Notes under the pieces: generated by a model
Databases searched by the model: none
Seen by the model: the letters and a program-made list of their open reading frames with translations, nothing else
Told to the model about the DNA's origin: nothing
Program-made: the position numbers and the translations under genes
Shown here: positions 8,143 to 58,911 of the stretch, one piece after another
Numbering within the stretch: the stretch's first letter is position 1
Layout: each line of letters begins with the position of its first letter
Origin: Hypanus sabinus
Lineage: Eukaryota
DNA: 64,000 nt
Direction of reading: 5' to 3'
Assembly (NCBI RefSeq): GCF_030144855.1
Contig: NC_082722.1
Location: forward strand, 27,342,001-27,406,000

Positions 8143-8987
8143 GTAAGGAACCCATGTACTATACAGCCTACTTTGAAAAATAAACGGACTATAATCTGTC
8201 ACTGGAATAAATTTATGAAGAGTTCGCATTATATGCTTTTGTTTCATGAAACGTTAGCATTTAAATTGCATGAAAATTGCTGAAGTAATAGGCAAAATAC
8301 GGGACCAAATGTCGTTGCTCTTTGTCATCAATGCTCAGAATCTAAAATCATACATTGCTCCGGAGAGGTGTGCATGACTACGTCCGAGGGAATGTACCCG
8401 CTGTTCAAACCAGGCTCCTTCATCAATTTCCTTTTTGTTTTGCAATCCCGACATTAAGCAGTGGTTCATTAGTCGAACTTTTATAACAAGACCCTGAAGG
8501 AAATTATCATGAGAAGCAATTATTTTCATTTATTTAACACAGTCCCTACCCGACACGGCTTAAAACCTTTTGGGTGTGTGAGCGAAACTGCTTTCTTCGC
8601 TGCGGTGAGAAACCAGCAGGGTTCTATTTGACCGAAGGTATATGATTGAAATCGAGAAAAACGGCAAAGGTAAATTGGAATGAAGAAATGTTGTTACTAT
8701 TTTTGCACGCTTGTCTTATTAGACATTCTTCAAATTCTAAGCGGTTTTCCATCTTTACCATCAGAATGCTCAGAGTACAGATTTGAATTTCTATCTCAAG
8801 AAAGATTTGGATAATTCCTGAATTCAGCAAGAACGCAAAATTTGCAGCAAAATCAAGAAAGCACTAGAATTTGTTTGCGGTGTTTCAGCTATTCGTACGT
8901 CTTTGGCTCTTAGATATTCAGTGTCTTATGTCTTTTATTTTTGTTTTATTCAACTATTATTGATACTGTGGCTTATTTTTCCCGCAG

Positions 8988-9294
8988 CCGGCAAAATTAC
9001 TACGAGCATGGTATCTCAGTTCCCTAGGGACCTGGACTTCCCGGGTGGTGCGAATGTTACCATGTTCTGCAGGTTTCAAATATCAGCAGATACTGTCGAC
9101 GTTCTTTGGTGGAGGGAAGGCGAGAAGGCTTTTTTTACAAAGGGACAGCGGAAGATATTTTACCGTAGAAAGAAGAAGGGGAGCACTTCCACTCTGGAAT
9201 GTCAAAGTCCCCGACTCGGGAATGTATTAATGTGAAGAAAAGTATCAGGAACAATCTTCCGGGAGAGGAAGTGGTAACAAGCTCACTGCGTTTG
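8988..9294 (+). pseudogene. Gene A pseudo-exon: V(J) domain paralogous to gene B exon 2
   Basis: Acceptor cccgcag|, donor |gtaagt. 307 bp = 306 plus one extra T in the T7 run at 9130-9136. Corrected frame: MVSQFPRDL..MFC..VLW..DSGMY*C..GRGSGNKLTAF, with TAA at 9228-9230 replacing the second Y of YYC. Confidence 0.9.
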
Positions 9295-10679
9295 GTAAGT
9301 ATGGCAGTTTGGAGATTTTCGGCTCTGTGCGTTTTACATCAAACTTAGTGATGAGGGTAAAGCGAAATTATTCTAGCTGATAAATCAACGGCAAGAATAC
9401 ATTTGTTTCCCGTGTTAAAATATACCCCAGTCCAGAGATTCTAAATTCAGAATTAAAAAGAACAGAAGAATTAATCACATTTCATGTAGAAAACTTTAGT
9501 TGCCTAATACAGTTAATTCTGTTTATCTTATCGGACTTCCCTGGCTCTTTCCCACCACTGTTCCTCCTACCCTGTTCATCGGCTATTTCCCAGTGAAACC
9601 TAATGTCTAAGGTTAGTGATACCTTTGGATTTTACCCTTTTTATTGCGAAGGTGCTTTGAATACAATGAACTAATTTTCAATAAAAGTTAGGATTGCTTT
9701 GCAGTAAAGCGGCTGAAATAATATTAATGCTAATGTAAATGGCTGGACTTGTATAACGCGATTCGTCATCACAGAGCACCCAAAAATGATAACGTATATA
9801 ATCTCTATCAAAGAGTCTGTATTCAAAAGTACAACGCTCAATTTCCGCAGCAACACGTTAAGAGGAATAACACCCAGTTACAAACGAATTAATACCAACA
9901 TCAAGTAACGATTTGCCGCATGCACTGCAAATTGTCATTCCAACCTTTGTCATGCAGGTTCACAAAATCCATTGTTTTTCGCCATAGAAAGTGGGGAGAA
10001 ATATAGAACTCTAAAGATCGAGGTGAAGGGTGGGGAGTCGAGCGCAAACCCACATTCAACACTTCCGCTGGCAGCTCATTCCACAATAGATTCACCGTCT
10101 GAGTGAAGATGTTTCCCTTGATGTTCGACTTTAATACTTCTCATTTCACTCTTCAGCTATGACTTCCAATTACATTCTGACCAAACCTATGTGAATGAAG
10201 CAGCCTTACAATCACCATATCTGTATCGCTCATAATTTTGTATACCTCTATCAAATGATCGCGCATTCTCTTACGAATCACGGAAAAAAACCGTCGTTTC
10301 CTCATAATTCATGTCCTCAAATTCATGCATATCCTTGTAAGTTTTGTTTATACAAATTCAATCATATTGATAACTTTAACGCAGACAGGTAACCAGAACT
10401 GCGAACAATATTTCAAATTAGTTCACACTAACTTTTAATACAATTTCGGCATAACTTCCCAACTTCTATACTCAATACTCTGATATATGAAGGCGAATTT
10501 GACAAAAGCTATCTTTACGGTATTATCCGCCTTTGACTCTACTTTCACTGAGTTATCAATCTATATTCCAAGATCATTTTTTACCCCACTCCTCAATGCC
10601 TGTCTCGTTCACTGTGTATATACGAGACTGTTTGGTCTTCTCAAACTGCAACAGCTTACCATTACCTTCATTAAATTCT

Positions 10680-12630
10680 GGAAAGCGGCCAGTGAGTGAC
10701 TGAGCCAGTGAAGGAGTGGAGATTTGAGGCTTTGACTTGAGAGGCTTCAACGAAAAGAGGCGGAGGACGAGCTTGTTCCCAGTTAGTCTTTACAATGCCT
10801 CCAGAGACGGTGACGTGCCTCTCCTGTGAGATGTGGCAGTCTTGGGGGAACTCTCCTCTCCCGCAGAGTCTCATCTGCCAGAAGTGCTTGCGGCTGGAAG
10901 ACCGTGTATGGAATCTGGAGCAGCAGCTGGATGACCTTCGACTCATAAGGGAGAATGAGACAGTCATAGATGAGAGCTACAGGGAGGCAGTCATACCTAG
11001 GCTGCCGGAAGCAGGTCGTCTGGGTGGAAGCCAGGAAAAAGAAGGAAGCAGTTACTCTACTGGGGGTATTCTATAGGCCCCCTGGTAGCAGCAGAGATAC
11101 TGAGGAGCATATTGGGAAGCAGATATTGGAAAGGTGCAAAAATAACAAGTTTGTTATCATGGGTGACTTTAACTTCCCTAATATTGATTGGCACTTGATT
11201 AGTTCCAAGGGTTTAGGTGGGGCAGAGTTTGTTAAGTGTGTTCAGGATGGATTCCTGTCACATTATGTTGACAGGCCAACTAGGGGGAATGCCATACTCG
11301 ATCTTGCATTAGGTAACGAACCGGGTCAGGTGACAGATCAGTCAATGGGTGAACATCTGGGGGACTGTGATCACAGCTCCCTGACCTTTAGCATTATCAT
11401 GTAAAAGGATAGAATCAGAGACGACAGGATTTTTTTAATTGGGGAAGGGGAAATTATGAGGCTATATTGCTAGAACATATGGGTATGAATCAGGAAGATG
11501 TTTTTGCAGGGAAATGTGATATGGACATGCGGTCGATCTTTGGCCAGGTGCTTTCAGAATTGGTTTGCCTGCAGAAGGCAGAGGGTCGTGGTGGAGGGAG
11601 TACATTCAGATTGGAGGGTTGTGACTAGTGGTGTCCCATAAGGATCTGTTCTGGGACCTCTACTTTATGTGATTTTTATTAACAACCTGGATGTTGGGGT
11701 AGAAGTGTGGGTTGGCAAGTTTGCAGACGACACGAAAGCTGGCGGTGTTGTAGATCGTGTAGAGGGTTGTCCAAGATTGCCGAGAGACGTTGATGGGACG
11801 CAGAAGTGGGCTGAGAAGTGGCAGATGGAGTTCAACCCAGAGAAGTGTGAGGTGCTACATTTTGAAAGGACAAACTCCAAGGCAGTGTACAAAGTAAATG
11901 GCAGGATACTTGGTAATGTGGAGGAGCAGAGGAATCTTAGGGTACATATCCACAAATCCCTGAAAGTTGCCTCACGGGTCGATAGGGTAGTTAAGAAAGC
12001 TTATGGGGTGTTAGCTTTCATAAGACGAGGCATAGATTTTAAGAGGCGCGATGTAATGATGCAGTTCTATAGAAATCTAGTTAGACCACACTTGGAGTAT
12101 TGTGTCCAGTTCTGATCGCTTCAGTATAGGAAGGATGTGGAAGCATTGGAAAAGGTACAGAGGAGATTTACCAGGATGCTGCCTGGTTTAGAGGGTATGG
12201 ATTATGATGAGAGATTAAGACAGTTAAGGCTTTACTCTTTGGAGAGAAGGAGGATGAGAGGAGACATTATGGAAATGTACAAGTTATTAAGAGGAATAGA
12301 CAGAGTGGACAGCCAGTGCCTCTTCCCCAGGGCACCACCGCTCAGTACAAGAGGACATGGCTTTAAGGTAAGGGGAGGGACGTTCAAGGGGGATATTAGA
12401 GGAAGGGTTTAATATTATAGGAACAATCAGAGAATGTTTGGTGCGTGGAATGCACTGCCTGAGTCAGTGCTGGAGGCCAATACACTAGTGAAGTTTAAGA
12501 GATTGCTAGACAGGTATATGGAGGAATTTGAGGTGGGGGGGTTATATGGGAGGCAGGGTTTGAGGGTCCACACAACATTGTGGCCCGAAGGGCCCGTAAT
12601 GTGCTGTACTATTCTATGTTCTATGTTCTA
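10680..12630 (+). mobile_element. CR1-clade LINE with large internal deletions
   Basis: ORF1 N-terminus (CLSCEMW..CQKC) runs directly into mid-endonuclease (FYRPP, MGDFNFP), then jumps to the RT C-terminal half (KFADDTK) and the 3' tail. Confidence 0.88.
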
Positions 12631-13149: not shown

Positions 13150-14800
13150 AAGGCTTGAGACATAATTAGCGATCGAACTCTTGCAAAACCGAAAGGTCTG
13201 AAAGTAGGTAACTCACCTAGAACACATCATGTACATCCCAGGATTCTGATAAAAGTTTCTGATGAGATTGTGGAGGCATCGATAAAAGTCATTCAAGAAT
13301 TACAAGATTCTGGAATGGTTCTGGTGGACTTGAAAATTGCAAAAGTCACACCACTCATCAGGAAGTCAGAGAGGGAATAATGGGATAATATAGGCCGGGA
13401 AGTCTGACCTCATTGGTTGACAAGATGTTGGAATCCGTTAGTAAGGATTAGGTGTTATGTTATTTGGAGTCACATTTTAAAACTCCCCATTGTCCGCAGG
13501 ATTTCCTCAAGGGGAAACTCTTGCCAAACAAATCTGATTGAATTATTTGAAGGATTGAAAAGCAGGATAGATAAAGATAGGCAGAATCGGACGCTGTGTA
13601 CTTGCATTTTGAGAAAGCCTTTAATAAGGTAAATCACACAAAGCTTTTTGACAAGCTACGAGCCTAAAGTATTACAGGAAAGATTCGAGGGTAGATGAAG
13701 CAGTAGCTGGTTGATAACAGAAAAAGAACGGGAATAAAGCAAGCATTTTCTGGTTTGCTTACCGTGTCTAATTTTGTTCCACAGGGGTCTGTGTTCTGAC
13801 CGATCCGTTTTAGGTTATACGTCATTGATATGGATGATAGAATTGATGGCTTTCTCGCATAGTTTGCAGACGATAGGAACATAGGTGGTCAGGCAGGTTA
13901 TTTTTAGGAGATAGAGAGGCGACAAAAGGAATTAGAAAGATGAGGAAAGTAGACGAAGAAATGGCAGATGGAATACAGTGTCGAGAAATGTGTCGTCATG
14001 CACTTTGGTCGAGGATATGAAAGTTTTGACTATTTTCTCACCTGGAGTGAAGATACAAAAACATTGTGGTGCAAAGGGACTTGGGAGTATGTGTGCAATA
14101 TTCACTACATATAAAGTTGCAGGTTGGGTCTGTGATCAGGAAGGTAAATGCAATGATCGCACTCATTTCAAGAAGACTGGGACACAAAAGCAACGATGTA
14201 ATGTTAAGAATTTATAAAGCACTGGTGAGGCATCGTGGCGGATGTTGAGAAGCTTTGGGCCCTTTATCTTGGAAAGAATGTGTTGAAACTGGAGAGGGTT
14301 CAAAGGAGGTTCACGACATTGATTCCAGAATTCAATAGCGTTTCATATGAAGAGCGTTTTATGGCTCTGGGGCCTGTTTTCACGAGAATTCAGAAAAAAA
14401 TAGGGGTGACATTATTGAAGCATATTAAAAGTTGAAAATACTTGATAGTGCGGATGTGGAGTGGATGTTTCCAATGCTCGAAGAGATAAAGACCAGAGGA
14501 CGCAGCCTCAGAATACAGGGGCATCCTTTTAAAAAGGAGATAAACAGGAATGCATATAAACAGAGATTTTAGAACCTGTGGCACTTTTTTTGCCACATGC
14601 ACTAATGGAGACCAATTTTCTGTGGGTACATAAAGCAGAGGTTGATACATGCTTGATTGGTTCGAGCATGGATAGCTCCCGGGAGAAGGCAGAAGTTAGG
14701 GGCTGAGCGGAAAGTAATATATATTATGAAATGGCAGAGCAAACTTGGTGGGCAAAATGGCTTAATTCGGCTCCTATCTCCTATCGTCGTATGGTCTTAA
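13150..14800 (+). mobile_element. Old, highly decayed CR1 RT fragment
   Basis: Remnants of KAF.K, FADD and KLERVQRRFT; typical CR1 3' tail near 14760. Confidence 0.75.
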
Positions 14801-15933
14801 AACATTAGTTATACTCTAGTCCTCCGGCACTTCACCCACAGGTAAGGACATTTTGAACACCTCTATCGGGACCCTTTCATTGTCTGCATTAGCATCCAAC
14901 AAGCTCCGACGGGACACATTGCCATGTTCTGGGGACTTCTTCCAACTAATTTGCCTCACGGCTGTAACCCGTGTATGGGCCATGCCATTACTTCTATGCT
15001 GTCTTAATTGTATAGTCTCTGTGTACGTCTCCTGAATAAATGCGGATGGAAATATATAAGATATCCCTCACCACCATACCCCCCGCCCATCTCTTTTGGC
15101 GCCATACATTGTTGAACCCGCTGATCTTCAAATGGATCCATTTAGTCTGTCGCTATCCCTTTATGCTTCCTGTATCTGCAGAAGCCATTCGTTTCATTTT
15201 TCACCTTAGAATTGTCCTTCACCTAGAATTTGAGAAGGCCACGATAGTTGACGTCAGTATAGGCGTGGGAAGCGGAGTCGGGTAACCGTGAGCTCCGGAT
15301 GGCTATTGTAGGCAGAGCGAAATCCTATCTGCTTTGAGAAACAGATAAAGCAATCTAAATATTGAATCTGCCCTGTTAGACACCGGCCATAGCTGTCGCG
15401 AAAGGCGTCCATGTTTGGAAATCCTTAAAATTGGGCTGACGTTTAGCAAACCTTGTGCATGCAGAAACTGAGGTTATTCAGTTCGTGTTTGACTCTCTGC
15501 AAGGCATCATTTCCCCAATCGATCCGATAGCAGTGCCAACTCACTGTCGACAGTTTTGCTGCAGGACTTCAGACTTTAGAAAGAATAAATAAATAGGATC
15601 GACTCGCTTGGTGTCAATCTGCATTGGTGTTTCACAGAGAACAGTTCCAGGAATGCTTCACATTCCGGGAAAATATCTATTACTGAATGTCTGTGACGAG
15701 AAAGCTAAACCCCAAGACCGGAAACACTCCCTAGGCAGTTGAACTGCCAAAATATTCGGCTCCATGTCCATTCGTACTATAGGAATCTGTGATACTTTGG
15801 GTTTTGGAGTTCAGTTTTGATGCGAAATAAAAAATTCAAAATTAGGCAGTTTTCCAAAGCTAACTCCTGCTGCAATCTTAGCTGTGCAATAAAGCTCCAA
15901 TAGCATTCAAAAGAGAACATCTTCAACACTTCG

Positions 15934-15998
15934 GACACTTTAACCATCCAATGGGTTACCCACTTATGGTGGGTAACCCATTGGATGGTTAAAGTGTC
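15934..15998. repeat. Perfect 30-bp inverted repeat with a 5-nt loop
   Basis: 15934-15963 is the exact reverse complement of 15969-15998; loop ttatg. Confidence 0.97.
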
Positions 15999-16081
15999 AT
16001 GCTAGTTGCTGAGGAGATAAAGAAATCCACCTGCACTGAAATGGATCGAAAATACCCAATATTACATTGTTTCTACTCAAG

Positions 16082-16372
16082 CTCCTCCAACTCCATTGGA
16101 AATTGCTCTGATTGCAGGGTTTTCGTCTCCTCGAAAACTCCTTTGTAAAACGTCTGCTTTCTACGAAAAAATAGAAATCATTTGACGAAGAAATGACAAG
16201 CAAATTCACACCGGAATAGAAAGCGTTACAAACCGAAGCGTGGATGGTTTACACGAAGTTTTTAGGTTATTGTAAGTCACGCAGTCTACCTGAGGAAAAT
16301 ATACTTACACCTGTCTAGTGTCGCAAGTCTCCTTAAGGGAGTCTGCCGGTTTCAGCTACATAGTGGAACAAG
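16082..16372 (+). pseudogene. Gene A pseudo-exon: C1-set domain paralogous to gene B exon 3
   Basis: PPTPLEI..LLCKTSAFYEKIEII*..YTCLVSQVSL..FSYIVEQ G|gtaagatggtg, with the same donor context as gene B. Three in-frame stops, including TGA at the conserved Trp. Confidence 0.9.
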
Positions 16373-16869
16373 GTAAGATGGTGTTATGATGAAGTCATGA
16401 TGTTGGATCTCGGCCTGAAACGGCGACATTTTAGATCTGCCTGATCGGCTGAGTTCTTCAAGGATTTTCTGTGTTAATCTGGATTTCAGCATGTTCTGAA
16501 TATTTTGCGCTCAATATACGCTGGAAGTGCTTATATTTCATTGTGGTGGGGTCAATGTGATCTTAAGAACAGTAACTTAACAGCTCCCTAAACACGGAAG
16601 AATGACTAATTTGGAAGCTTAGAAACTGACAGTGAATGTTCAACGTGTAAGGTGATCAAAAACTAACGTGTTTTTCCGTTAGTTTAAATCGTGTCGGACG
16701 AATTAAGAAATTAAATTCCTGCAGTATTTGTAAAGTTGCAAAGTTCTGAACATTTACAAAAATTGCGACAAAGCAAAACTTAAACTCTATATCTCATCGT
16801 GAAATAACAAAGGCGAAATTTTCATTTCCTCTCCTATGATGTATTTTCCGATATTGTGCAGTGAGATTT

Positions 16870-17344: not shown

Positions 17345-19489
<2,145 letters not shown>

Positions 19490-26855: not shown

Positions 26856-27021
26856 NNNNNNNNNNNNNNNNNNNNNNNNNNNNNNNNNNNNNNNNNNNNN
26901 NNNNNNNNNNNNNNNNNNNNNNNNNNNNNNNNNNNNNNNNNNNNNNNNNNNNNNNNNNNNNNNNNNNNNNNNNNNNNNNNNNNNNNNNNNNNNNNNNNNN
27001 NNNNNNNNNNNNNNNNNNNNN
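26856..27021. other. Assembly gap (166 N)
   Basis: Run of N. Confidence 1.
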
Positions 27022-29009
27022 TATCTTCTTCGACTAGAAGGGAATGATGGGAATCACATTCGAGGAGAAAATTAAGTACAGATACTTTATCAGTTTCATA
27101 TGCTCTTTACAAATATAGACCAGATTGTATTTAATTCAACTGATGCTTGTTGTTTGAAATTTGTACTGAAAAAAGTCCATTTAGCTCTTTGAAAGTACTG
27201 ATAACAAAGAAAAACATTACATTTAGCTGCTGGGATTAAAGATGTGGGAAGCTTCACATTTAGCCAAAAATAAAAAAAAGAATCGCCCGTTTAAATCGAT
27301 TTCGATTTGTCATTCCCAGTTAACACTGGTGGCTATTTAGCTAATTTTCTCAAGTTTCTGATCAGACTATTGAAGTAAGTCCATTAATTGTGTAATATTA
27401 TTCACGTGCATTGTTTTTCTCACATAATATCTTTCCCCAGCTGTCGGGATCGTTGACATAGAGTTTTATTTACAAACTTCTTGCAATTAACGCAAATACC
27501 ACGATACTTCTGTTTATAACCTAAAATGTTCTCGGGAGAACCAAGGGTGAGAAACAAAGTTAAAGCCTTAGGTTTATAAACTTTCATCGGGTTAGCAATC
27601 AGAAATCTGTGTTCAGCTTCTCTCTCCATGAAAATTCAGGCAGAGAAGTGTTGTCACGGGAACTCGTTGCGAATATTAGAACTGCGTCCGATTTATATTT
27701 CCCTCCGTTGAACGTTGATATAAGTGCAAGAATAGATTTTTAATTCGCCGGTTTTCCATGTCAAAAAAAAAAATCGTCGCCGATGGTGGCGATCATCTGG
27801 ATTTATTTTTTCATCCTGTATGGTCTGTGGTGGCAAAATAGTTTGGAAACGTTTAAGCGGATTTAAGCGGATTTTCTTTTCTTGGAATCATCGGGTCTTT
27901 GCAGTGGACCGGAAAGGGGACTACGAATGAGTATATCAGGCATTATCACCTTGAATGGCCGGGCAGTAGACAGAGCCACAATTGCTGTTTTTTTTTTCTT
28001 AATTTTCTTTCTCTGCTTTTATTTTATGACAACAGCCTCTAATGAATCGGAAAAATGTCGAAGACCAAAATGATCACTTATCTTCCCAATTGTTACATGT
28101 GACATCGATCATCAATCTTTGATGGACGCAAGAACCGAAACGTAGCGACGCTCTGGCCTACACTAACTGATAATATATGGATATGAACTGCAAATTGGAT
28201 TCTCAGCTTCACTGCTTCTTTGATGTATTTACATCTGCGGACAATGTATGCTTGCTTTGATGTTTGGATGCCTGTGTGTAATTCGAATCGGAAATCTGCA
28301 AAGCGGCATACGTCAGTTTGTCAGCTCCATTTCCTTTAGTCTGTGAAAGTAATGCAAAATCAGTGGTTAGTCGGGCATAAGTGACTGCCTGAATCACACG
28401 ATTGTAAAATAAATTAGAGATGTATTCATAAGTAATGACAATTAGTTGCTTACGCTTCATAGACAATTATTTCAATGCTGTTTCAAAATTTCATTTAATT
28501 ATTTATATATTAGCGTTTCTTCCCATACCTAAAAGGAACTTAAACAAAATCAAGTTACGAGAGTAGTGAAATCTTTGAAGTAGCAGTTAAAGGTATGTGA
28601 TAACAGGCAAAATTATAATACAAGCGTGTTTTCTGTCATCTGTGACTGATTGTCGGATCCTGTTTCGCTTATGGAGCTCACAGGTGTTTGTTTAGCTACA
28701 CCTGCTAACGCAGTTCCAAATGCACATGGACATTGTTGTCAGTGGACAACTCATAACTGATAGAATGAAAGTTGGCATTTTGTTTAGCCAGGTTCTCTGA
28801 TTACAGTTTTTAAACTATTCGGTATTTCCGGTAGTTAAGTTCTTCTCGGTTATTATCAGTCACTCGTGTTTATCATGGACCTGACAATGGGCGTTGGGAA
28901 GGATGGCATTCCTAGTTTTGTGCTTTTTGGCGTTTCCTCACATGGAAATTACATGTGAAATTAAATTCGTAAAAGCAAGGAAAAAGTAATCTCTAGAGAT
29001 TTTGCAGAT

Positions 29010-29610
29010 GATGGAAATCTTGAAGAATGCAAAGAAAATACTGAAGGGATTCATCAGGTAAGGCAACATGCAACAAGGTAAATAATCCGTCGTTTCTTTC
29101 TGAAAGATACGCTTTATCCGGATCGGAAATGAGGTTGAATACGGAATATAAAGTTGTGAAGCGGGTGCGGGAAACGTAGGAAGATCAATAAACTGTCGAT
29201 TGCTTCTGGCAGAGACGCTTTATCGGGACCGGAAAACAGGGGTCAGAATCCGGAATATGAAAGGTGTGGAGGGGGTGAGGGGAAGGTGGCAGGTGACAGG
29301 TGAAACCAGGTGAGTGCGAAGGTATGTGGATGACTGGGGTGGGAATGACGTAAGAAGCTGGGAAGTGTCGGGAGGAAAAGGCAAACGGTGTATGAAGGAG
29401 TCGGAGACGTGAGGACAGTGGACTCTGCAAAATGGAAGAAGGAGGAGCACGTGGGTGGAGGGCAGCCTGATGGGCAGATGACGAGAAGAGAAAAGGTGAA
29501 ACGGAGAATGGAAAATAAAGAGAGAATGGGATGATGCAGAAATTCCCAAAAGTTAGAAAAATTGACATTTATGCCTTCAGGTTGGAGTCTCCACAGACGG
29601 AAGAAAATAC
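29010..29610 (-). mobile_element. Penelope-like 3' tail fragment
   Basis: QPEGINVNFSNF C-terminal motif followed by a pyrimidine-rich tail on the minus strand. Confidence 0.6.
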
Positions 29611-29898
29611 CCTGGTACCAGAACGTTAAGTTGTTCCACTGAAAGACGATTAGCTATGAGTCACTTTATATTTAGTTACAGTGTCAATGGTGTACTCAAA
29701 TTTGTAAAATTAACCTCCTCTTGGATGATGATTATATATAGAAATATAAACACTCTGGGGTACTCCGGTTTCCTGCAATGACTTGCAGGTTAGAATGTTA
29801 ATTGGTCACTTGGGTGTGACTGAGCGGCACGGGACAGTTGTACCGGAAGGGCCGGTTACCGTGATATATCTCTAATGCAAATCTATATCACATTCACG

Positions 29899-30027
29899 CT
29901 AATTTCTCTGCTTTACCTGGGAATAGATAACGCGCTCCTCATGTTGTCGATCTTTGCGAAATAGATTGTTCTCCCTATGGTTTCGTGAAGCATAGGCAGT
30001 GGTGTGCTCAACCGGTGCTTGTTCAGC
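29899..30027 (-). CDS. Gene B exon 6: terminal cytoplasmic exon with ITIM VIYSQV
   Basis: Strong acceptor atttttctatcag|; phase-0 frame AEQAPVEHTTAYASRNHRENNLFRKDRQHEERVIYSQVKQRN*. ITIM at 29914-29931 matches (I/V/L/S)xYxx(L/V). Confidence 0.7.
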   Translation of the reverse strand, partial: AEQAPVEHTTAYASRNHRENNLFRKDRQHEERVIYSQVKQRN

Positions 30028-33000
30028 CTGATAGAAAAATATATATTAAATACAACTAACTGTTACAGAGCTCAGTTATCATAAAGAAAATTAGATTTGC
30101 CAAATCTAAACACCAAGGATAAAAAAATTGTTGGAATAACATTTTGTCCACGCACAATTATACCGTCTATATATCATACATGAGGTGGGATCGCGACCGA
30201 TCGCGACCGTGTTGGAAGTCGCTATGTTTAGACTTTCAAATCACCGCTTATAACAGTCCTAGGAATAGGATGGGGTTCTCAGTTTTGGCCATCTCTGTTT
30301 TTTCGTCTCCTAAATCCTAACTCTTACATCGCTCAAAATTCTGTGCATGGGCACAGGTCCATGTTCAATCTTATACGCATGCGTCGAATTATGGTAATGA
30401 TTGCCCTGATCAAAACTCGTCCCTGCGATGCAAACTGAAACTGTGACCCTTACCTCTCACATTATTCAAGTTGCGAATATTGGAGCAAATGACAAGTCCC
30501 GATGCTAAGTCTCGCTTAACTCTAGCCGGAAACAGTGAAGCGGCATTCTGGGCCTCTGTTGATTTAATTGATTTTGCTGGTAAATTACTTAAATTACGAT
30601 CGAAGTAGGGAGAACCAATGAAAGTAGTTGTTACAATAAGTGATGAAAATGGCATTTGTTTTTCTGAAATAATGGCATAGCATTCCAGAGTAAGAAGTAT
30701 TAGTAAAAGTTCGTCATCTTCCACTTAGATATTATTCGAAGCAGTAGCCCTACATTTCCGGAAGAGTTACGAACACTGGTAGAAGTTTTATCGGAATTCT
30801 ACCATAATGAAATCAATGATGGATGTATGACAACCTTATCTTAGTTGCAGCAGTCGCTCCTTTTGCACCTAAAGTCGTTAGATGAAATTAAAGCAAAATA
30901 CATTAAAATGGGAAATGTGATTAATGAAACAAGAAGACAAAGGTTATCATTAGAATGAATCCAGGTTAAAAAAAAATAATAACATTGAAGTGCTAGAATC
31001 ATGAAATAAAACAGAGAAATAGAACACACAAAAATTTTAGTAGATCTGGAAACACCTGTTAAAGGGAAAATGTCAATGTTCACATTGCAATCTGCGGAAG
31101 GTTCTTTAATCTGGAATGTCAACTGGCTCTCTTTCCAAAATTGGTCAGTAGCTGCATATTATTTTTTGGTTTTAATCCAAATAGGAGACGACAATACTTT
31201 TATCCGTTTTAGGCTTTGCTTCCCCCAATAGGATAATAGTCATTCAGCGTTGCATCGTGGACTAGAAGGTGCCATCTGGAGTTTTGCTTAACACATGGTT
31301 ATCATTGTTCACCACATACTGCAAGGTTTTATTGCAAGTATATTAGATTATATTGCAGGTTAGGCACCGCTGTGTGGATCTTGGTTGCGGATCGGGCTTA
31401 CAACTGCATTGAATATTGCAAAAACCATTTCAACATAACATGATTTAGTTACATTTTTACCTTGATTACTGTCTGTTAGATCAAATGTAACACACATTAC
31501 GAATTGATACGTGCACATACTATACTTTCCCATTGTACAGTCCAACGCGATTCTCGTAAGTTAGCATTTAGTAGTCTCTCACAGTCTCAGATGCGTGTTG
31601 AATTATTCGTCAAAACAACTGACTTTCCAATGGTAAATATTACCGTTCCTCTTCCAATTCAACCGGCTATGAACTGATGTAGAACCTTGAAAGGATACAG
31701 CAAGCTGGTGCAATGGGAACATTCAAAATAAATTTTGGATATATAGTTGAAAATAAATATTTGACGGGGAAATAGTTTAATTTTCCCTACTACGCTCCAA
31801 AGTGTTATGGAATAACATAGATTCATAATATCTTTACTATGCGAATGCCCCGCTCTGAAACAAGACCGATTGCTTTACCTACCGGGTCCTCATTCTGACA
31901 TCCGTCCAAAGAATTTGTGTTACCCCCTTCAGAACAGAAAGCAAAAATAAATGATTGACATTGTGAACATTGTACATTATTAATTTGATACCATTCGAAT
32001 TAAGCGTGCAAGTGGAACCGCTGAAGTTACGGATCTTTCAGAAAATATTTGTTGGTAACAGTTGTGCTAATATATTGTGTTCTGCATTAACCTGGTGCTA
32101 TGCTGAAAAGGCTTTGACTTTCAACGAGGCTGTAAAGTGATAATAGCAATACAGCTACGGTCCCGTATTTAAGTATGGCAACCAAGATGGAAATTAAAAC
32201 CAATGAGGCGTACATAAGTTGGTCAATGTACTTTACACATTCAGAGGGAGTTTAGATCTACGCCAAGTCGTTTATGTTTCAAAATAAGGATCTGCTATTG
32301 TGTTAAAGAAGATACTGAATTACTCCAAAGTGATGTAACAGCATTCGGAATTGAGGTATGAAATACTTCCAGTGGACTGGTGAAATAGCTGAACTTTATC
32401 ATCAAGTGTACATTTTACCAAAATATTATCACTGAAATCTGGCTTCGAAAATCGCGATCCATGCTCAATCATTCTGTGAATGTCATTTACTGATTTTCAG
32501 TAAAATGTCATTAACACTTCTATTTTGTACGAATAGAGGTGAAGTTTCTCAGCGATCAGTGTTCTTACCGTGCGATCCTTTTAACTTGAATATCAGCAAA
32601 AGAATTATCACAATTAAAATTAAATTTGATGATGCGCCCACTGCATATGCGAGAATCAATCTGGTATCAGCGCCTTGAAAAAGAAACCAGGAAGCATTTA
32701 TACATCTAAAAACAAACCCACAAATGGGAAGCATCATTGCAAACTATTATAAAGGGTCCTTTCAAATCACACTACACACTGATAGGAAATTGTCAGAATG
32801 TACGGTATTGAACAAAAAAATCTGGTTTTTAATTTCTCCAGACACATATGAGCTCCTGACTATGACTAAGAATAGGCTCGGCTGATTTTTCCTATACTTC
32901 GCTGGACAATAGATATCAGCACAACAATTGAACGTGTAATCATCTAACCTAATACAATTCTGATGTCGATTCAATCTTTTAATTTACGTCTGTCAAAGAC

Positions 33001-36000
33001 ATTCTTTAGTACGAGCAAAACCATATAGATAACTTGCAGACACGCCAAAGGAGTCCCGGTGCCACAAAATTTCTCTTCTGCGTTACATGCTGAAATTACT
33101 CCATAACTTCATGAGTTTATAACACTGTACCCTCTAAGTCTCCTGAATGTGTATCGAGCATATTAAACGTATTTACCACATGTTATATTTTCCACAGCTT
33201 TACGAGTGACAAACCCGAATTAATGGAAAACTGCATAATGAAAACATACATAAACACGAGTCATCCATTTGAACTGTGTTGCCCACAATTATTGGAAATT
33301 AATACAGTCAGAGACTGAATTATGTCAAAGTCTGCTCACAGTTTCGCACCCTATGCATTCGTTCCAGGTGGCAAATAAGTGTCATGCCACAGTGTTCAGT
33401 AATTCCGACCTTGATTCTGATTTTGCCCCATGTCCACATTTTTCCTGTAAAACTATTTTGCTTTAATACATCTTCACTCACAACCCGATGGTTCCCCCCT
33501 TTGTTATATCACTATGCGATTTAGAGCTTAAGTTTTGCTTTATCTAATGTTTGATAAATGTCCGGAAGTTTGTTACGTTACACTTGCTACAAAAAAATCT
33601 ATTTCTTAATTCAACCTACACGATTCAAAGTGAGGGTATAAGACACTTGTTTCGAAACACCACTCACAGTGAACGTTCACTGCAATCAGGTAATCTGAAA
33701 AATTCGTCCTACTTCCCTGTTTAGCTAACTGATCTGTGATCGTTCTTAACCAGATTTGATCGGCATACTTATATCATTTGGATATGATTCCATCTTCCCT
33801 GGAGCGCTAGAAATTCAGAACATGTTGAATATTCAGAGTAACACACAAAATGCGGAAGGTACGCAGCAGATCAGTAGAGAAATACAATAACGAAGTTTCG
33901 GTCCGAGACCTTATATCTGGACGCAATCAAGACACCATCTTACCTTGCTCCAGGATGTAGCTGAAACAGGCAGGTACCGTTAGGGAGACATGCGACACCA
34001 GGCAGATGTAAGCATCTTTTCCCGAAGCAGAATGATTAATTTCCAATGAACTGTAAGCCTTGTATAAACCCTCCGCGGTCTGGTTTATCACTGTTACTAT
34101 TCCAGTGCGAATTTCCTGGTTATTTTTTTGCCAGATGAATTCTAATTCTTTCGGGTAGAAGGCAGCCGTTTTACAGAGGAGCTGCCGATGAGACGGAAAC
34201 TCTCCAGTCGGAACGATTTCCAATGGGGTTGGGGGAACTTGAATAAAAAGATAGTTACATTGGTTGTTTACCATTTATTTAGATAAAGTAAGTTCCTTTA
34301 TCTTCCCGCCAATTACAATGCAATCTCACTATCAAATTATTTACCCGCCATTGGCTACCAGAATTTTATAAATTATTTTGTTTAAGTTCAAGTTCAAAGC
34401 TTTTAAACCAGACAGATGTACATGGCTAAATTAAACAACCTTCTTCTGCGGTCAACTGCAAAATACAGTCCATGTATTCCCACACAGCATGTGCAGTCAC
34501 CATCAATCACATGCAGTGCAAAATAAACAAAGTAAAATCGAGTCACAGTGCAGAAACAGCTGAAAGTAAGAATTCGAAGCAGACACCGAGAAGGTGAATC
34601 AAAGGGGTACAGTGTGCGGAAGACATCCCGTTTTGAATAGTCTTTCAGCTTTATAACCAAGGACGGTGTTTGCGGCAGCACTTTGGCTTTGGAAAATGTT
34701 CCCTTCTTTGTTTATTTTCATTCCAATCAAAACTGAACTACAAAACTCAAAATATCACAGAGTTCTACAGCCGGAACGCAGTAAGTTCGTGTACATGTTT
34801 TTTAATATTCTGGTAACTCATTTGTTCAGGTAGTTTTTCAGAACTTGCGTTGGAGCTTTCCAGTCATCAACATTCACAGACCGAGCTTCCCTCGGAATGC
34901 AAATCATTGCTGGAAAAGTTTTTCAGTATTTAATGTGTTGAATGCGGCAAATTGTACCCTCCGTGAAACATCTAGGAACGCAAATGCGAAACTGATATTA
35001 AACGCAAATATTCTACGTTTTAATTCTTTCATAAACCTGTCTGTCTGCGACAAAATGGTTCGATCGTGACCTGGCACTGCTATACGAACGATGATGCCCT
35101 GCAGAGAGGCAACCCAGGAGCTGAACGAACTCCGCTTCTCTCTAAAGCGATTTCACTCAAAGGTGAGCACAAAATTCACGATATTACAAACATGGACTGC
35201 CTCCGCTACAACTATGGTCCGTATGTAACTTAGGAAACTCTATTGTCAGATTGTTTTATCAATGTGTCACAACATTTAGCTTTTCGCTCAGCCTACAATG
35301 GCCGTCCTGAGCTCACGGTTGCCCGCCCAGCACTGCCATGGACCATGTACGGATTACAGATGTTTACGTGCTTGTTGCTGTATGGGAAACTTGTTTGTAT
35401 AGGTCCCCAGGGCCCAATATGGAGTCCCGTGCAACCTTTTTGGGAGGGTTGTGCAGAATTTTGAGGTGCCCTGATGGAGGCATTCAAAACGTCCTGACCT
35501 TCTGGTGAGGTGCCGGAGGACTGGATATGACTAATGTTTTGTACTTATTCAAGAAAGGCTCTAAGAGTATACCGGAATTTTTTAAGCTGGTAAGCCTGAC
35601 GCCTGTAAAGCCTAACTTACTTGAAATGGATTGGTGAGCGATGGGGAATGCACGACTGTTGGGAATGAACGTAGCAGATTTCGTGCGTGCTATGAGTGAC
35701 TTTATTTCTTCTCCAAACTGGCCACTTTTGTTCTTACCTCTGCCTTTGTTGGTCAATTTTGTATTAACGCAAAATGAGGCAGTGAATCTGCATATCTATG
35801 CTCGTTTCTAAGGGATAGGCATTGTGGAGCAACACGCTGATCAAGCTGTGTATCTCTCTGTGCAGTTTTTACGCACACGTCCCATATTTGACATTAATGA
35901 AGTGGCTTTGCTTGCTTTGCCGATGTTTATTAACTATGTATAAATATTTATAGCTGTGCACTTCAGAAACTATCGGATCGAAATCGGCGTAATACTTCGA

Positions 36001-37984
36001 GATGAGGTAGTATAAAAGCAGGCTGAGGAACGGGATGGTAGCATTTAATCTTACAACGTTTCGCTTAAAGTTAAATGGCTTGTGATTTGCCCTTCAGCCG
36101 AATTTGTCTACAGTTCCCTATCTCTCATTATCTAACCCGAATCAAGTTCTTCGTCTAAAAATTACGTGGTTCTGTACATCTGTTTTTATAAGCTTTTGAT
36201 TGTTTTTAAGTTGTTGGACAGCAAATGTCACGCCACATTTTAAAATGGGTGTAGGAAAAAGATTGACATATACAGGCTAGTTAGCTCAACGTCTGTAGTC
36301 GGGAAAATGCTTAAAGCTGTCCCTAAAGGAGAAATAGCGAAAGATTTAAAAAGGAATGTTTCCATTAGATAGGCGCAGCATGGATTCAGAAAGTCCAGGT
36401 CCTATTTGAGAAGCTTTCTGGTGTTTCTTGAGGACATAATGAATGCAGTGGATGGAGGGGAACACGTGGCTGGCGTATGCCTGGATTTCCAGAAGGCGTT
36501 CGATGAGGTGCCACATAAGAGAATTATAAATTAGATATGGATGCATGAAGTCGGAGGAAGTGCATAGGCATGGATAGAAAAATGATTATCCAGCAAAAGG
36601 CAGAGTGTTGGTATAAATGGGCGATTCTCCGTTTGGCTGTCAGTGGTGAGTGGGGTGCTGCAGGGGTTAGTGCAGGGCCCGCAGTTGTTTACCATTGGCA
36701 TTTATCATTTGGAATAGGGAACTGAGCGTAGCGTAGCAATTTTTGCTGTTAACAGTAAACTGAAAGGAAAATAAAATTGTATGGAGGATGTGGACGGTCT
36801 TCAGAGGGATATAGATAATGTGAGTGGGACAAGGTCTGGCAGATGGAATATAATGTTGGTAAATGCTAGATCATCTACTTTCTAAGGAATAATAGAAGAG
36901 CTGAATATTATTTAAATTGTGAAAGATTGCAGCATGATGTTGTGCACAAGGAATTAGGGGTGTTTGTGCTTGGCTTGCAGGTGCAAAAGGTTATTAACAA
37001 GGCGAATAGAATCGTGGCTTTCATTGTTGGAGGGATTGAATTCAAGAGCTGGGAGGTCATGCTGCAACCGTACAGGGTTCTGGTGACTGCACCTGGAGTA
37101 CTGTGTGCATTTCTGGTCACCGTACTTCAGGAAGGATATATTGTCTTTGGATGAAGTTCAGAGGAGGTTCACCAGGCATTGTGTAGGAATATAGTCATAA
37201 CAAATATAAGGTTGGAAATATCATCGGAACAAATAATAAGTGGAGCAAAAGTCAATCTGCAGAATCACATCGAAATAATCAACATAATAATCTGAAGAAT
37301 ATTTCGAAATATTTTGAAAGCTGGAATGCAAATTAATGGCACAAATTTTCAAAGAGCAATAACATTTCCGCAATCTTGGCTTTTCTTCAAATGCAAAGAG
37401 CTGAAAGTTTTCCACTTACAGGAATAAAGACACTTACTTAACACAATAAGCTGAGAGCCACTTCCATATCCCAATATTTGTTGTTTAGTTTTCACTTGAC
37501 AGTAATACACGCCTGCGTCTGCGTATGTCACATTCAGGAGGGTGAATGTAGCCCTGCCTTTCTTTACATTGAACTGATTTCTGCTGTCTGGTTCTATAAA
37601 TGTTTCCTGACCCTCCTTCCGCCACGAAACTTCAGCAGTATCTTGTAGTATTGGAAATTTGCAGAACATGGATTCACTTCCACCGATTGAGGCATTTAAG
37701 GTAGCCGGGAATTGTTCCACTTTGGCCGATGTTCCTTCTGAGGCTGATAAAACACAAGAGAGATTGCTGAAAACAGTTGCATTCACTGGACAACGAATCA
37801 ACAGACAAAATAGGCAGAACACTGGTATGCGAATTGGAGGTTTACTATGGCTAAATTTGCTGCGGGTAAATGATGTATAATATTGTAAAATATCTGTTTC
37901 TTAAACTGGGCACAAAAATCTATGCATACCTGGCCAAAACGCGGGGAGCAGAGCCACGAACCAAACGGTTGCATCCAGCGACAT
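29899..37984 (-). CDS. Gene B: multi-exon Ig-superfamily receptor, leader-V(J)-C1-TM-cytoplasmic ITIM (SIRP-like / non-rearranging antigen-receptor-like architecture), 334 aa predicted
   Basis: Six exons: 37984-37930, 37743-37438, 34237-33944, 32673-32569, 30576-30461, 30027-29899. They sum to 1005 nt and form one open frame with GT-AG introns and phases 1,1,1,1,0. The first four exons are strongly supported; the two tail exons are moderately supported. Confidence 0.8.
30461..30576 (-). CDS. Gene B exon 5: cytoplasmic exon (AKSIK...LVICSNIRNLNN)
   Basis: Acceptor tttaccag|; only the phase-1 frame is open; a phase-0 donor AAT|gtgaga links it to the terminal exon. An alternative phase-1 donor lies at 30454. 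Confidence 0.55.
32569..32673 (-). CDS. Gene B exon 4: transmembrane segment
   Basis: GADTRLILAYAVGASSNLILIVIILLLIFKLKGSH: hydrophobic stretch followed by basic stop-transfer residues. Acceptor tttcttttcaag|, donor |gtaaga, 105 bp, phase 1-1. Confidence 0.85.
33944..34237 (-). CDS. Gene B exon 3: C1-set Ig domain
   Basis: C1 motifs LLCKTAAFYPKELEFIW and YICLVSHVSL. 294 bp, acceptor ttcaag|, donor |gtaaga, phase 1-1. Confidence 0.92.
36250..37190 (+). mobile_element. Decayed CR1 RT fragment in the V-C1 intron of gene B
   Basis: LDFQKAFDEVPHK and GIEFKSWEVMLQPYRVLV motifs. Confidence 0.8.
37438..37743 (-). CDS. Gene B exon 2: V-type Ig domain with in-exon J-like G strand
   Basis: KVEQFPATLNASIGG..MFC..VSW..DAGVYYC..GYGSGSQLIVL. 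306 bp, acceptor ttatcag|, donor |gtaagt, phase 1-1. No RSS heptamer between YYC and GxG. Confidence 0.93.
37930..37984 (-). CDS. Gene B exon 1: signal peptide MSLDATVWFVALLPAFWP(A)
   Basis: ATG at 37984, hydrophobic core, phase-1 donor CCAG|GTATGC, 186-bp intron to the V exon, in frame with it. Confidence 0.75.
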
Positions 37985-41859: not shown

Positions 41860-42640
41860 ACACACACAAAATGAACTCAGCAGACCAGGCAGCATCTATG
41901 GAAATGAATCAATAGTCAACGTTTCGCCCCGACTCCTTTCATTCGGACCGGAAAGGAGGGTGGAATATACTAGAATAAATAGACGGTGAGATGGAGGAAA
42001 AATTAGAAGGTGATAGGTGAAGTCAGGTCGAGGGGGCTTTGTGGGGAAGGAGGAAGATCATATGTACGGTTGGGCGTTGGGATGAAGTACGAAGCTGGGA
42101 GGTAAGAAATTGAAAATGCAAAGAGCGTGAGAATAAGGAATCTAATAGGGGAGGGGATTAGACTACGGCAGAAAGGGAAAGAAGTGGGACAGAAGTGGCG
42201 GTTATAGGCAGCAGAGCAGAGAGGATAAGAGGACAGAGCTGAGAGCAGAAGAAAGTTATGGCAGGGAAAATTACTTGAAGGAGAAGCCGATGTTCATGTC
42301 GTCGGGTTGCAAGCTACCTAGACTGAATCCGAGGTGTTGCTCGCCGACCCTGTGAGTAGCCTCATGAAGTCGTAAGAAGAGAACATGAAGCGAAATGTAG
42401 GAACTTGAATAGATAGGAATAGAAATAATTGGCCACTCACAAATTCCGCATTATGGGATGGAGTGGAGTTGCTCTGAAAAGTAGTCCCCAGTTTATGTCG
42501 ACTCCAACCAGTGTAGAGGAAGCAGCATCGGTATCTCTGACTACAGTAGACGACGCTACCCGATTTGCAGGTAGAGTGTTGACCTGCAGTGGAGGTGATG
42601 AACTTATAATTTTCAAGCTGTCTTCGCCTGTCAGGCATTT
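41860..42640 (-). mobile_element. Penelope-like 3' fragment
   Basis: VVYCSQR..CFLYTG and VGEQHLGFSLGSLQPDDMNI motifs, plus tail. Confidence 0.7.
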
Positions 42641-43621
42641 TTCCTACTGTTTCGATTTATATTTTTTGATTCGAAAAAGACTGATGTTTTAACACATTTT
42701 CAAATTAATTTACATAGATATGACAGTGTAGAATCCATCTTGGTTGTGAAATTAATTACATAAATAATATACTTTTTTTTTCATAGAAAGTCCTCTTCTT
42801 TGTTTTACTGCGCGATCTGACGTCAATATCCGACCACATTTCATTATTTTCTGCATTAAATGAAAATAAGCCTAAATCATTTTCCATATAATCGCACATG
42901 ATGTAACCGTTCACGCTTGGAAGGATGTTAACAATTGTTACGGTTATAGATTAAACTTAAAACTCTGTTTTAATTAACATTGTGATGAAGCTTCTCATTT
43001 TTTCTCGTTCCAGAATGCACACGCCGTAGAATCGAAACACCGATATCGCTGAAAAAATGAGAAACATTCAGTTGCGCGGAAGAGTGTTTGAAGTTACTTT
43101 ATATTAAAAAAAAATCCACTGTCTGTAACCTAAACATCAAGCTTAAAAATAAAGCCAACAATCTGCAAATCGATTTTTGAGACACATGTAAATTTTAACC
43201 ACAAAGGCTTCCGTGATGTCATCAGCGTGCCCGTTATGTATTTCTATTCTCTGTCATTTGTCGTTTCCTGTTAACCTGTACGAGGAGTTTGTTGCAGATC
43301 TTTAGCTGAAAGAAAACATTGAATCCTGGAGTGCATCACGGAAGACGGCTCTTCCACCCCTTTCATACATTCTGTACAAAATATTTACGTAGCCGCTCTT
43401 ATACATGCCTGCAGCAGGATACCACTTCCTCTAACAACTTTTTCTATATACCTACCGTCCTCTGTCTGAAAACCATGCCGTGCCCAGCTGTGATTTAAAT
43501 ATTTTCTCTCTCAGTTCACAGCTATGTTTTCTAGATTTGGATCCCCTGTACTGAGAAATGGGCTATGAGCATCTTGTATATTAATGTCCATAAAAATTGT
43601 TTTATTTTCAAATTCCTATAG

Positions 43622-57725: not shown

Positions 57726-58911
57726 TTGTAAAGTGCCCTCTTTTCCTAGGATCTCCTAACATGGGAAATAATTTTCCCATATCTAATCTGTCCAGGCCTT
57801 TTAAAATTCGGAATGTTTCTGTGCAATCCCCCTTCATTCTCCTGAATTCCACAAAGTTCACTCCAAGAGCTACCAGACTTTCCACATATGATAATCCTTT
57901 CATTCGTCTAATAATTTTATAAATCTTCTCTGTACACTCTCCAATGTCAGTATATCCTTTCTAAAATAAGGAACCCAAAACTGCACACAATACTCCAAGT
58001 GTGGTCTCACGAGTATCTTATAGAGACTCAACATCACATCGCTGATCTTATATTCTGTGTCTCTAGAAATGAATGCCAACATTGGATTTGATTTCTGCAC
58101 AATAGACTCAACCAGCAGGTTAACTTTTAAGGCATCTTGCACAAGAACTCCCAAGTCTCTTTGCATCTCTGCATCTTTAATTCTCTCCCCACCTAAATAA
58201 TAGTCTCCCAGTTTGTTCCTTCCACCAAAGTGCATGATCATACACTTTCCAACATTGTATTTCTTTTGCCACTTCTTTGCCCATTTCGCTAAACTAATTA
58301 AGTCGCTCTGCTGGCTCTCTGTTTCCGTAACACTATCCGCTCCTCCACCTATCTTTGTATCATCGACAAATTTAATCACAAACCCATTAATACCGCAGTC
58401 CAAAACATTGAAAATAGTCGTTAAAATCAGCAGTCCCAACACCGACCCGTGTAGAACTCCACTGGTAACCGGAAGGCAGCCAGTAGTGCATCCCTTTATT
58501 CCCACTTCCTGTTTTCTGCCGAGCAGTCAATGCTCCACTTATGCTAGTAATTTCTTTGTAATTCCATGGGCTCTTATCTTGCTAAGCAGCTTCCAGTGCG
58601 GCACCTTGCCAAAGGCCTTTCGAAAATCCAAATACACCACAACTTCCACTTCTCTTTTGTCTACCCTGCTTTCAATTTCCTCAAAAGTTTGCAGTATATT
58701 AGTGAGACAGGATTTTCCTTTCAGGAAACCATTCTGGCTTTGGCCTTTCTTGTAAAGTGCCTCCAGATACTCCGTCATCTCTTCCCTAATAATCGATTCT
58801 AATGACTTCCCAACCGCGGATGTCAGGCTAACAGGTCCATAGTTTCCTCTCTGCTGCCTCATCACCCTTCTGAAATAGCGGAGCAGCATTTGGAATTTTC
58901 CAGTCATCTGG

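Follow-up and report, generated by a model that had tools for sequence, protein, structure and literature searches.

Does a locus that joins an antigen-receptor-style ectodomain to an inhibitory cytoplasmic tail encode an intact receptor, and to which receptor family does that receptor belong? The question is raised by a minus-strand gene of Hypanus sabinus located in a 64,000-nucleotide stretch of DNA (RefSeq assembly GCF_030144855.1, contig NC_082722.1, positions 27,342,001–27,406,000 of the forward strand), which is referred to here as the window and in whose coordinates all positions are given. A preliminary description of the gene had proposed six exons that encode a 334-residue protein with one V(J)-type and one C1-set immunoglobulin (Ig) domain, a single transmembrane segment and a tail ending in the immunoreceptor tyrosine-based inhibitory motif (ITIM) VIYSQV. 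The present analysis makes it probable that the locus is a seven-exon gene for a 348-residue non-rearranging V(J)-C1 ITIM receptor, a SIRP-like member of a chondrichthyan family and a mosaic of two of its sub-lineages, with a lineage-B N-terminal part and a lineage-A remainder.

The gene consists of seven coding exons (Table 1), and its frame is open over all 348 codons. An AG acceptor after a pyrimidine tract and a GT donor are found at every junction, and all 12 splice sites conform to the canonical pattern. The splice phase is 1 at junctions 1-2 to 4-5 and 0 at junction 5-6. Splicing of the split leader is required, since read-through of the leader intron hits a stop codon. All six exons of the preliminary description are present with GT-AG boundaries and matching phases, but exon 6 is not the last. 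The seventh exon was found by tblastn with the homologues P0006 and P0152, which match positions 28352–28215 with 64–70% identity (E about 1e-13), and its acceptor is TTTCACAG/ACT in phase 0. The six exons sum to 933 nucleotides, equivalent to 310 residues, and a 334-residue protein was reproduced with none of the junction sets tried. The donor CAG/GTAAAG begins at the codon immediately after VIYSQ, and the spliced product reads VIYSQT. The motif VIYSQV, followed by VKQRN and a stop, arises only because the exon-6 donor is read through to 29899, where the gene had been thought to end. VIYSQV is thus probably absent from the protein, and the canonical ITIM of the tail, LTYAAL, resides in exon 7. 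For annotation, the gene has seven coding exons, and the terminal ITIM of the six-exon model is an artefact of donor read-through. Five RefSeq homologues likewise run from IYSQ[T/A] into approximately 43 residues of exon-7 sequence. Residues 1–347 of the product align with P0160 (Hypanus sabinus, 62.8% identity), P0152 and P0006 (both Mobula) and P0162, and it has an intact leader and transmembrane segment and retains the invariant Cys, Trp and Gly positions of the two Ig domains.

Table 1. Coding exons of the gene and associated features, in window coordinates.
Feature	Position	Strand	Description
Exon 1	37930..37984	-	ATG and first part of the split leader (MSLDATVWFVALLPAFWP); donor CAG/GTATGC, phase 1
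Exon 2	37438..37743	-	End of leader and compact V-type domain with J-like G strand GYGSGSQLIVL; two N-glycosylation sequons
Exon 3	33944..34237	-	C1-set domain (FYP...W...YICLVSH) with PPTPL hinge in front; two N-glycosylation sequons
Exon 4	32569..32673	-	Membrane-proximal linker and single uncharged transmembrane segment (LILAYAVGASSNLILIVIILLLIF), then KLKGSHG
Exon 5	31883..31926	-	Short cytoplasmic exon (GNTNSLDGCQNEDP); entry phase 1, exit phase 0
Exon 6	29917..30027	-	Cytoplasmic, ending in ...EERVIYSQ; donor GTAAAG follows
Exon 7	28209..28340	-	TKGNGADKLTYAALQISDSNYTQASKHQSKHTLSADVNTSKKQ and stop; contains LTYAAL and TLSADV; beyond the gene end of the preliminary description
Candidate poly(A) signal AATAAA	28018..28023	-	Approximately 186 nucleotides past the stop; motif only
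Tract similar to lineage-A pseudogene paralogue (14799-16813)	33498..35540	-	Colinear nucleotide similarity of 69-82%

As predicted from its sequence, the apparently intact gene encodes a type I membrane glycoprotein with a split leader, a V domain, a C1 domain, a transmembrane segment and a cytoplasmic tail, and its ectodomain carries four N-glycosylation sequons. The V exon scores about equally with the Pfam I-set (37.7 bits, E 2.2e-09) and V-set profiles (PF07686; 35.3 bits against a cutoff of 26, E 1.4e-08), and 53 residues separate its two cysteines. An AlphaFold model of the V exon based on 31 family V domains (mean predicted local distance difference test score, pLDDT, of 93) contains strands A, A′, B, C, D, E and F and a G strand that is broken at the GxG bulge. 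Because only 12 residues lie between strands C and D, the model has no C″ strand. Its nearest solved folds are Ig-beta, shark vNAR, the Ig lambda V domain, the V-alpha domain of the T-cell receptor (TCR) and the first Ig domain of NCAM (template-modelling scores of 0.72–0.80). The V exon is accordingly modelled as a compact V/I-type domain with a J-like G strand. The J-like strand is germline-encoded within the V exon, and RAG rearrangement is therefore not involved. No heptamer of a recombination signal sequence (RSS; CACAGTG or CACNGTG) is present at 37300–37900, in or beside the V exon. A rearranging Ig or TCR gene would have a V segment ending in an RSS and a separate J segment, but here V and the J-like strand GYGSGSQLIVL share one open exon, as had been recognized earlier.

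The assignment of the adjoining domain to the C1 set, also made in the preliminary description, was confirmed by Pfam (PF07654; E 1.1e-10, 42.1 bits against a curated cutoff of 21), and the domain contains the motif YICLVSH. The best PDB sequence matches of the C1 exon are UrIg2 (the top match, E 6e-12), MR1, the Ig lambda constant domain and the second and third domains of SIRP-alpha. A two-domain model of P0160, the closest full-length homologue, is of high confidence over both Ig domains, with mean pLDDT values of 85–96 in most 10-residue blocks. The best PDB folds for this model are Ig light chains and TCR-beta. Among Swiss-Prot folds, SIRP-alpha ranks first, with TCR-beta, tapasin-related protein, CD276, BTN3A, PD-L1, B7-H6 and Ig light chains close behind.

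The transmembrane segment contains no charged residue and is followed by a tail of 95 residues with about four tyrosine motifs (...TAYASRN...EERVIYSQTKGNGADKLTYAALQISDSNYTQASKHQSKHTLSADVNTSKKQ). When the ITIM consensus [SIVL]xYxx[IVL] is applied, LTYAAL is the only canonical ITIM in the tail. VIYSQT, which has Thr at position +3 in the window gene and in all relatives alike, does not match the consensus. The first tail motif is TAYASR, compared with TAYASL in relatives, and thus has lost the Leu residue at position +3, a change that is common to P0163. The distal motif is TLSADV in the window gene, compared with TLYADV, a TxYxxV motif of the immunoreceptor tyrosine-based switch type, in relatives, and so has exchanged Tyr for Ser. 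The tail is colinear with those of P0160, P0152 and P0006, with VIYSQT and LTYAAL preserved, and represents the long-tail form of the family, with its series of IYSQ[T/A], LTYAAL and TLYADV motifs; the general motifs of the family tails are ..Y[AL]xL.., ..ERT[VI]Y[AS]Q.., ..TYAAL.. and ..[TL]xYA[DE][VI]... The core of the earlier view, a non-rearranging V(J)-C1 transmembrane receptor with an ITIM-bearing tail, holds, with LTYAAL in place of VIYSQV.

The C1 exon was used in a HMMER scan of 1.84 billion representative proteins, which returned 84 proteins at E ≤ 1e-10. Among the 150 matches listed, dozens carry the C1 domain at about residues 122–218 behind a V domain, and most of the others are long proteins with several C1 domains that do not belong to the family. 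The architecture of the window gene recurs in at least 50 clusters. All named members checked are chondrichthyan, from the genera Callorhinchus, Heptranchias, Heterodontus, Scyliorhinus, Chiloscyllium, Carcharodon, Mustelus, Cetorhinus, Pristis, Amblyraja, Narcine, Mobula, Hypanus and Hemitrygon, and a genome usually contains many members on one chromosome. Their RefSeq names are automatic and contradictory: SIRP-alpha-like is the commonest, and NCR3LG1/B7-H6-like, Ig lambda-like, TCR-beta-like, PD-L1-like, tapasin-related-like, CD276 homolog and MHC class II-like also occur. No description of the family was found in the literature searched, which covered UrIg, PRARP, cartilaginous-fish SIRP and non-rearranging ITIM receptors. 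The earlier suspicion of a poorly characterized cartilaginous-fish family is thereby borne out.

Family members share a leader, a V domain of approximately 100 residues with W(W)[KR]xGE and GxGxGSxLxV, a PPTPL hinge and a C1 domain with FYP...W...YxCLVSH at about residues 121–218, and the window gene keeps every invariant column in the alignments. Separate V and C1 trees, as proposed in the preliminary description, place both domains in clades of the family and leave the deep nodes without resolution. The family C1 domains form one clade (Shimodaira–Hasegawa-like approximate likelihood-ratio support of 95), in which the window C1 domain falls into a batoid subclade (99), and the window V domain lies inside the family in the V tree. 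When P0152, P0138 and a 25-sequence profile were used in word-indexed searches, the only relatives reached outside Chondrichthyes were a lungfish multi-V "turtle-like" protein and a sturgeon SIRP-beta-like protein, whose scores are far below those of the family. A CEACAM5 match in the same searches, also scoring far below the family, was rejected as spurious.

The family includes members with long ITIM tails, members with short tails and some with an Arg residue in the transmembrane segment. Judged from the protein sequences, this mixture is the make-up of a paired-receptor family. The short-tailed proteins P0034, P0092, P0095 and P0198, all from other species, have Arg inside the predicted transmembrane segment and are candidates for activating partners, which would associate with an adaptor by analogy with SIRP-beta and DAP12.

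Of the named receptor families, SIRP is clearly the nearest. The nearest named clusters in language-model features are SIRP-alpha-like (0.97) and SIRP-alpha (0.96), and in alignments with the family profile, V and C1 match SIRP-alpha (2wng, E 7e-28), Ig lambda and UrIg2 as one contiguous stretch. The family tails and overall features appear most like those of SIRP-alpha, whose tail has four tyrosines in a pattern that the family tails seem to resemble. Both groups are non-rearranging and combine an N-terminal V domain that carries a J-like G strand with C1-set sequence, a single transmembrane segment and a multi-tyrosine tail with ITIMs, and both mix ITIM-tailed, short-tailed and Arg-containing members. 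However, the window gene has one C1 domain and SIRP has two, and the window V domain is compact and lacks the SIRP-type C′-C″ region. Since a single C1 exon lies between the V and transmembrane exons and no second C1 occurs on that strand within the gene, the ectodomain falls outside the SIRP definition of one V and two C1 domains. The earlier statement that the gene fits no known family neatly is fair, but language-model features and the fold search clearly single out SIRP. In the trees, where SIRP-like sequences are represented by lungfish and sturgeon and the deep nodes lack resolution, the family V domains are split from the SIRP-like V domains by a branch of 99 (23–29% identity). The SIRP-like C1 domains of these bony vertebrates also lie apart from the family, with six of seven forming a clade (99) and the sturgeon domain on a long unplaced branch. 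An antigen-receptor-like V-C1 ectodomain combined with an ITIM tail has been argued before for SIRP-alpha, as a receptor with kinship to the precursor of the antigen receptors (PMC2785349).

The remaining comparisons are less close in architecture. UrIg and UrIg2 are elasmobranch non-rearranging genes with a split leader, a VJ exon and several C1-type domains, linked to the major histocompatibility complex (MHC) or an antigen-receptor complex (PMC12227049). The window gene shares with them the split leader, the single-exon VJ and a C1-type domain, and UrIg2 (PDB 9dmx) is the second-best match of the family profile, but the window gene has a single C1 domain and an ITIM tail, and the multi-C1 proteins taken as UrIg2-like lie outside the family clade. 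As far as the sequences indicate, the likeness to UrIg is at the general C1 level only. With Ig light and TCR chains, the gene shares the V-J-C1 order, and Ig lambda aligns with the family profile over V, J and C without interruption (domain E 1e-17). In contrast to those chains, it has no RSS, a germline-fused V-J, a compact V domain and an ITIM tail in place of a partnership with CD3 or Ig-alpha/beta. Teleost NITRs resemble the family in their germline-joined V with a J-like motif, in having inhibitory and activating forms and in their multigene clusters; to our knowledge, they have no C1-set domain, and no NITR occurred among the family-search matches that were looked up. VJ-type non-rearranging genes of the Ig superfamily, reported in 2019 and cited in PMC10751288, are described as relics of the antigen-receptor precursor.

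Two sub-lineages, A and B, are distinguished within the batoid clade, and the window gene combines them. Its leader and V domain are identical to lineage-B P0019 (Hypanus) at 15 of 18 and 83 of 102 residues (82% for V), compared with 6 of 18 and 43 of 102 for lineage-A P0160. The C1 domain is identical at 78 of 98 residues to P0163 and at 75 of 98 to P0152, both of lineage A (77–80% for P0002 and P0163). Exon 4 has 24 of 35 residues in common with P0160, and the tail exons match lineage A at 14 of 15 residues in exon 5 (P0160 and P0152), 31 of 37 in exon 6 and 37 of 43 in exon 7 (P0160). For lineage-B P0019 and P0179, the corresponding C1 and tail values are 49–53 of 98 (49 of 97 for P0019) and 13 of 28. 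Consistently, the V domain groups with lineage B (95/90) and the C1 domain with lineage A (99/99), and the forced groupings of V with A and of C1 with B were rejected by the approximately unbiased (AU) test (p = 0.003 and p = 0.005, respectively), for A and B groups that were chosen after the first tree had been viewed.

Nucleotide comparison fits a change of lineage in intron 2. Similarity to the lineage-A pseudogene paralogue begins there, at approximately 35540, and continues across the C1 exon into intron 3, and no similarity is found upstream of the tract. This arrangement is consistent with a B/A junction between 37438 and about 35540. In the other sampled species, V and C1 domains belong to matching lineages, and unequal crossing-over or exon shuffling within the cluster thus seems to have produced the window copy. 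The sequences indicate a mosaic gene whose leader and V domain derive from lineage B and whose C1 domain through tail derive from lineage A, and this is the new element at the locus.

A disabled paralogue lies in the same window, 20 kb from the gene and in the opposite orientation (8987–9344 and 16084–16374, plus strand). It has a lineage-A V exon with a frameshift and an in-frame stop and a C1 exon with a broken frame, and no transmembrane or tail exons were found downstream of it. Around its C1 exon, a stretch of approximately 2 kb runs colinear with the intact gene (69–82% nucleotide identity). A third paralogue fragment was considered at approximately 44.1–44.5 kb, where weak tblastn matches without an open frame were attributed to chance.

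Several observations weigh against an intact, working mosaic receptor. Two of the four conserved tail motifs, TAYASR and TLSADV, are degenerate, and LTYAAL is left without its usual partner approximately 26 residues downstream, so the motif changes could reflect weakened signalling or early decay. The 348-residue product, or a relative with 90% identity, was not met in searches of a 5.8-billion-sequence protein collection, and the gene seems to be called by no public annotation. The RNA evidence that the preliminary description had looked to for its junctions did not materialize: the gene's words are almost absent from the RNA-labelled runs of the species, and no spliced contigs were seen. Four runs that contain 23–37% of the V-exon words and had been taken as RNA proved to be genomic DNA, with contigs on 28250–34249 that cover introns and contain no exon joints. 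The read check left out 34250–37743, the region of the B/A junction, which leaves room for an assembly join, and the lineage groups of the AU tests were selected post hoc. One alternative is that the locus is a silent or decaying copy, that is, a young pseudogene whose frame is still open but which is unexpressed and losing motifs, as occurs in a birth-and-death cluster. The disabled paralogue in the same window, the degenerate motifs, the fact that no RNA run is listed as carrying the gene and the missing protein match would all suit such a copy. It is nevertheless unlikely in view of the 348 open codons, the 12 canonical splice sites and the intact Cys, Trp and Gly residues, leader and transmembrane segment. 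Moreover, the Leu-to-Arg change in the first motif is also found in the annotated Hypanus protein P0163, which makes it a lineage trait rather than fresh decay. Alternatively, the B-type V beside an A-type C1 might be an assembly join of two paralogues, a concern that is raised by the many similar paralogues and repeats of the cluster, by transposon debris in intron 2 and by the span of the read check. The sequence from V to C1 is continuous without N, however, splice phases match across the junction, and short DNA contigs from the four runs cover most of 28250–34249 without structural breaks, which indicates that this stretch exists as assembled in other samples; an assembly join therefore seems most improbable.

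A further alternative concerns the end of the transcript. If the main transcript ended in the exon-6 read-through, the product would have 310 residues and VIYSQV as its last motif. The read-through frame continues for a further five codons and makes a textbook ITIM, and P0002 (Mobula) is modelled with a similar read-through after exon 5, so that alternative 3′ ends may exist in the family. With the donor GTAAAG directly after VIYSQ, exon 7 in frame at 64–86% identity and five RefSeq homologues passing from IYSQ[T/A] into exon-7 sequence, such a main product is quite improbable. The classification could be challenged as well, with the family being a cartilaginous-fish branch of SIRP, co-orthologous to SIRP-alpha and SIRP-beta, and the gene merely one more member of a family already known. 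SIRP is the name most often given by RefSeq and the best named match by features and Swiss-Prot fold, the tails seem to follow the four-tyrosine pattern of SIRP-alpha, and the ITIM-tailed, short-tailed and Arg-containing members recall the pairing of SIRP-alpha with SIRP-beta. This placement remains rather doubtful given the single C1 domain, the compact V domain with 53 residues between its cysteines and without a SIRP-type C′-C″ region, the separation of the family V domains from those of lungfish and sturgeon, and the separate, well-supported C1 clades (95 for the family and 99 for the bony-vertebrate SIRP-like domains). A non-rearranging V(J)-C1 ITIM receptor of a SIRP-like chondrichthyan family, assembled from lineages B and A, is retained as the probable identity of the gene.

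If expressed, the V domain of this receptor would bind a ligand, and the C1 domain would serve as a stalk and probably as a pairing surface. By analogy with SIRP-alpha, Src-family kinases would phosphorylate the tail tyrosines, phosphatases of the SHP-1/SHP-2 type would be recruited, and the recruited phosphatases would damp activation of the receptor-bearing cell. Exon shuffling between the sub-lineages would have placed a B-type binding domain on an A-type signalling chassis. More tentatively, it is possible that the family is a sister or a surviving early form of the SIRP lineage, and so a close relic of the V-C1 gene that RAG later split, and that it diversifies by germline swaps of whole leader-V units onto different C1-transmembrane-tail chassis instead of by somatic rearrangement. 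If true, the window gene would illustrate how partners that share a binding domain but differ in inhibitory capacity arise in the oldest jawed vertebrates. A C1-set domain and a V domain with a built-in J strand are antigen-receptor hallmarks, and non-rearranging V-J plus C1 genes, such as SIRP, UrIg, UrIg2 and NKp30, serve to reconstruct the pre-RAG receptor (PMC2785349, PMC12227049, PMC10751288). A chondrichthyan-wide family of dozens of V(J)-C1 genes with SIRP-like inhibitory tails would add a well-populated data point at the base of the jawed vertebrates, with a bearing on the question of whether receptors of the SIRP type match Ig and TCR in age, and the mosaic copy would be a concrete example of module swapping as a way in which such families diversify.

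Further observations concern the reads and the annotation of the family. Single-base differences from the window occur at 29904, 30031, 31889, 34064 and other positions and are shared by most or all of the four DNA runs, and approximately three-quarters of the contigs from these runs are 95–99% alike. Other individuals or a very close species seem to be the source of the runs. The difference at 31889 is synonymous, and that at 29904 lies past the exon-6 donor and is relevant only to the read-through frame; the seven-exon product is unaffected by either. The P0009 contig (Logan, 1.7 kb), considered as a transcript, proved to be genomic DNA of a related species that contains the end of the V exon, a 1.2-kb intron and the C1 exon. 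P0008 (Amblyraja radiata, 493 residues) has two near-identical tandem C1 domains, and its V-C1-C1 layout stems either from a recent exon duplication, in mimicry of SIRP, or from an artefact of annotation or assembly. The RefSeq models P0014 (Mobula) and P0019 (Hypanus) have N-terminal extensions of 100–140 residues that match transposon-like sequence, e.g. at window positions 42277–42390 and 43164–43323, and P0019 also reads through its own leader intron; the extensions look like annotation errors in lineage-B genes.

Read-through of the exon-5 donor (31826–31933, minus strand) yields an open 22-codon extension (..NEDPVGKAIGLVSERGIRIVKIL and stop) that matches the C-terminus of P0002, a Mobula RefSeq model of 285 residues, at 72% identity. 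The extension may be an alternative short-tailed isoform without an ITIM or merely conserved intron sequence. No other host gene was found in the 64-kb window, only transposon remains. The sole N run of the window (26856–27021, 166 bases) lies outside the coding exons, approximately 1.2 kb past the stop codon. Much of the window consists of transposon debris (10970–12410, 17425–19215, 36300–37200 and 57903–59117), one stretch of which is inside intron 2. Pfam recognizes a reverse transcriptase at 57903–59117 and a hAT dimerisation domain within 18733–19215, and the other stretches resemble long interspersed nuclear elements or transposases by translation only.

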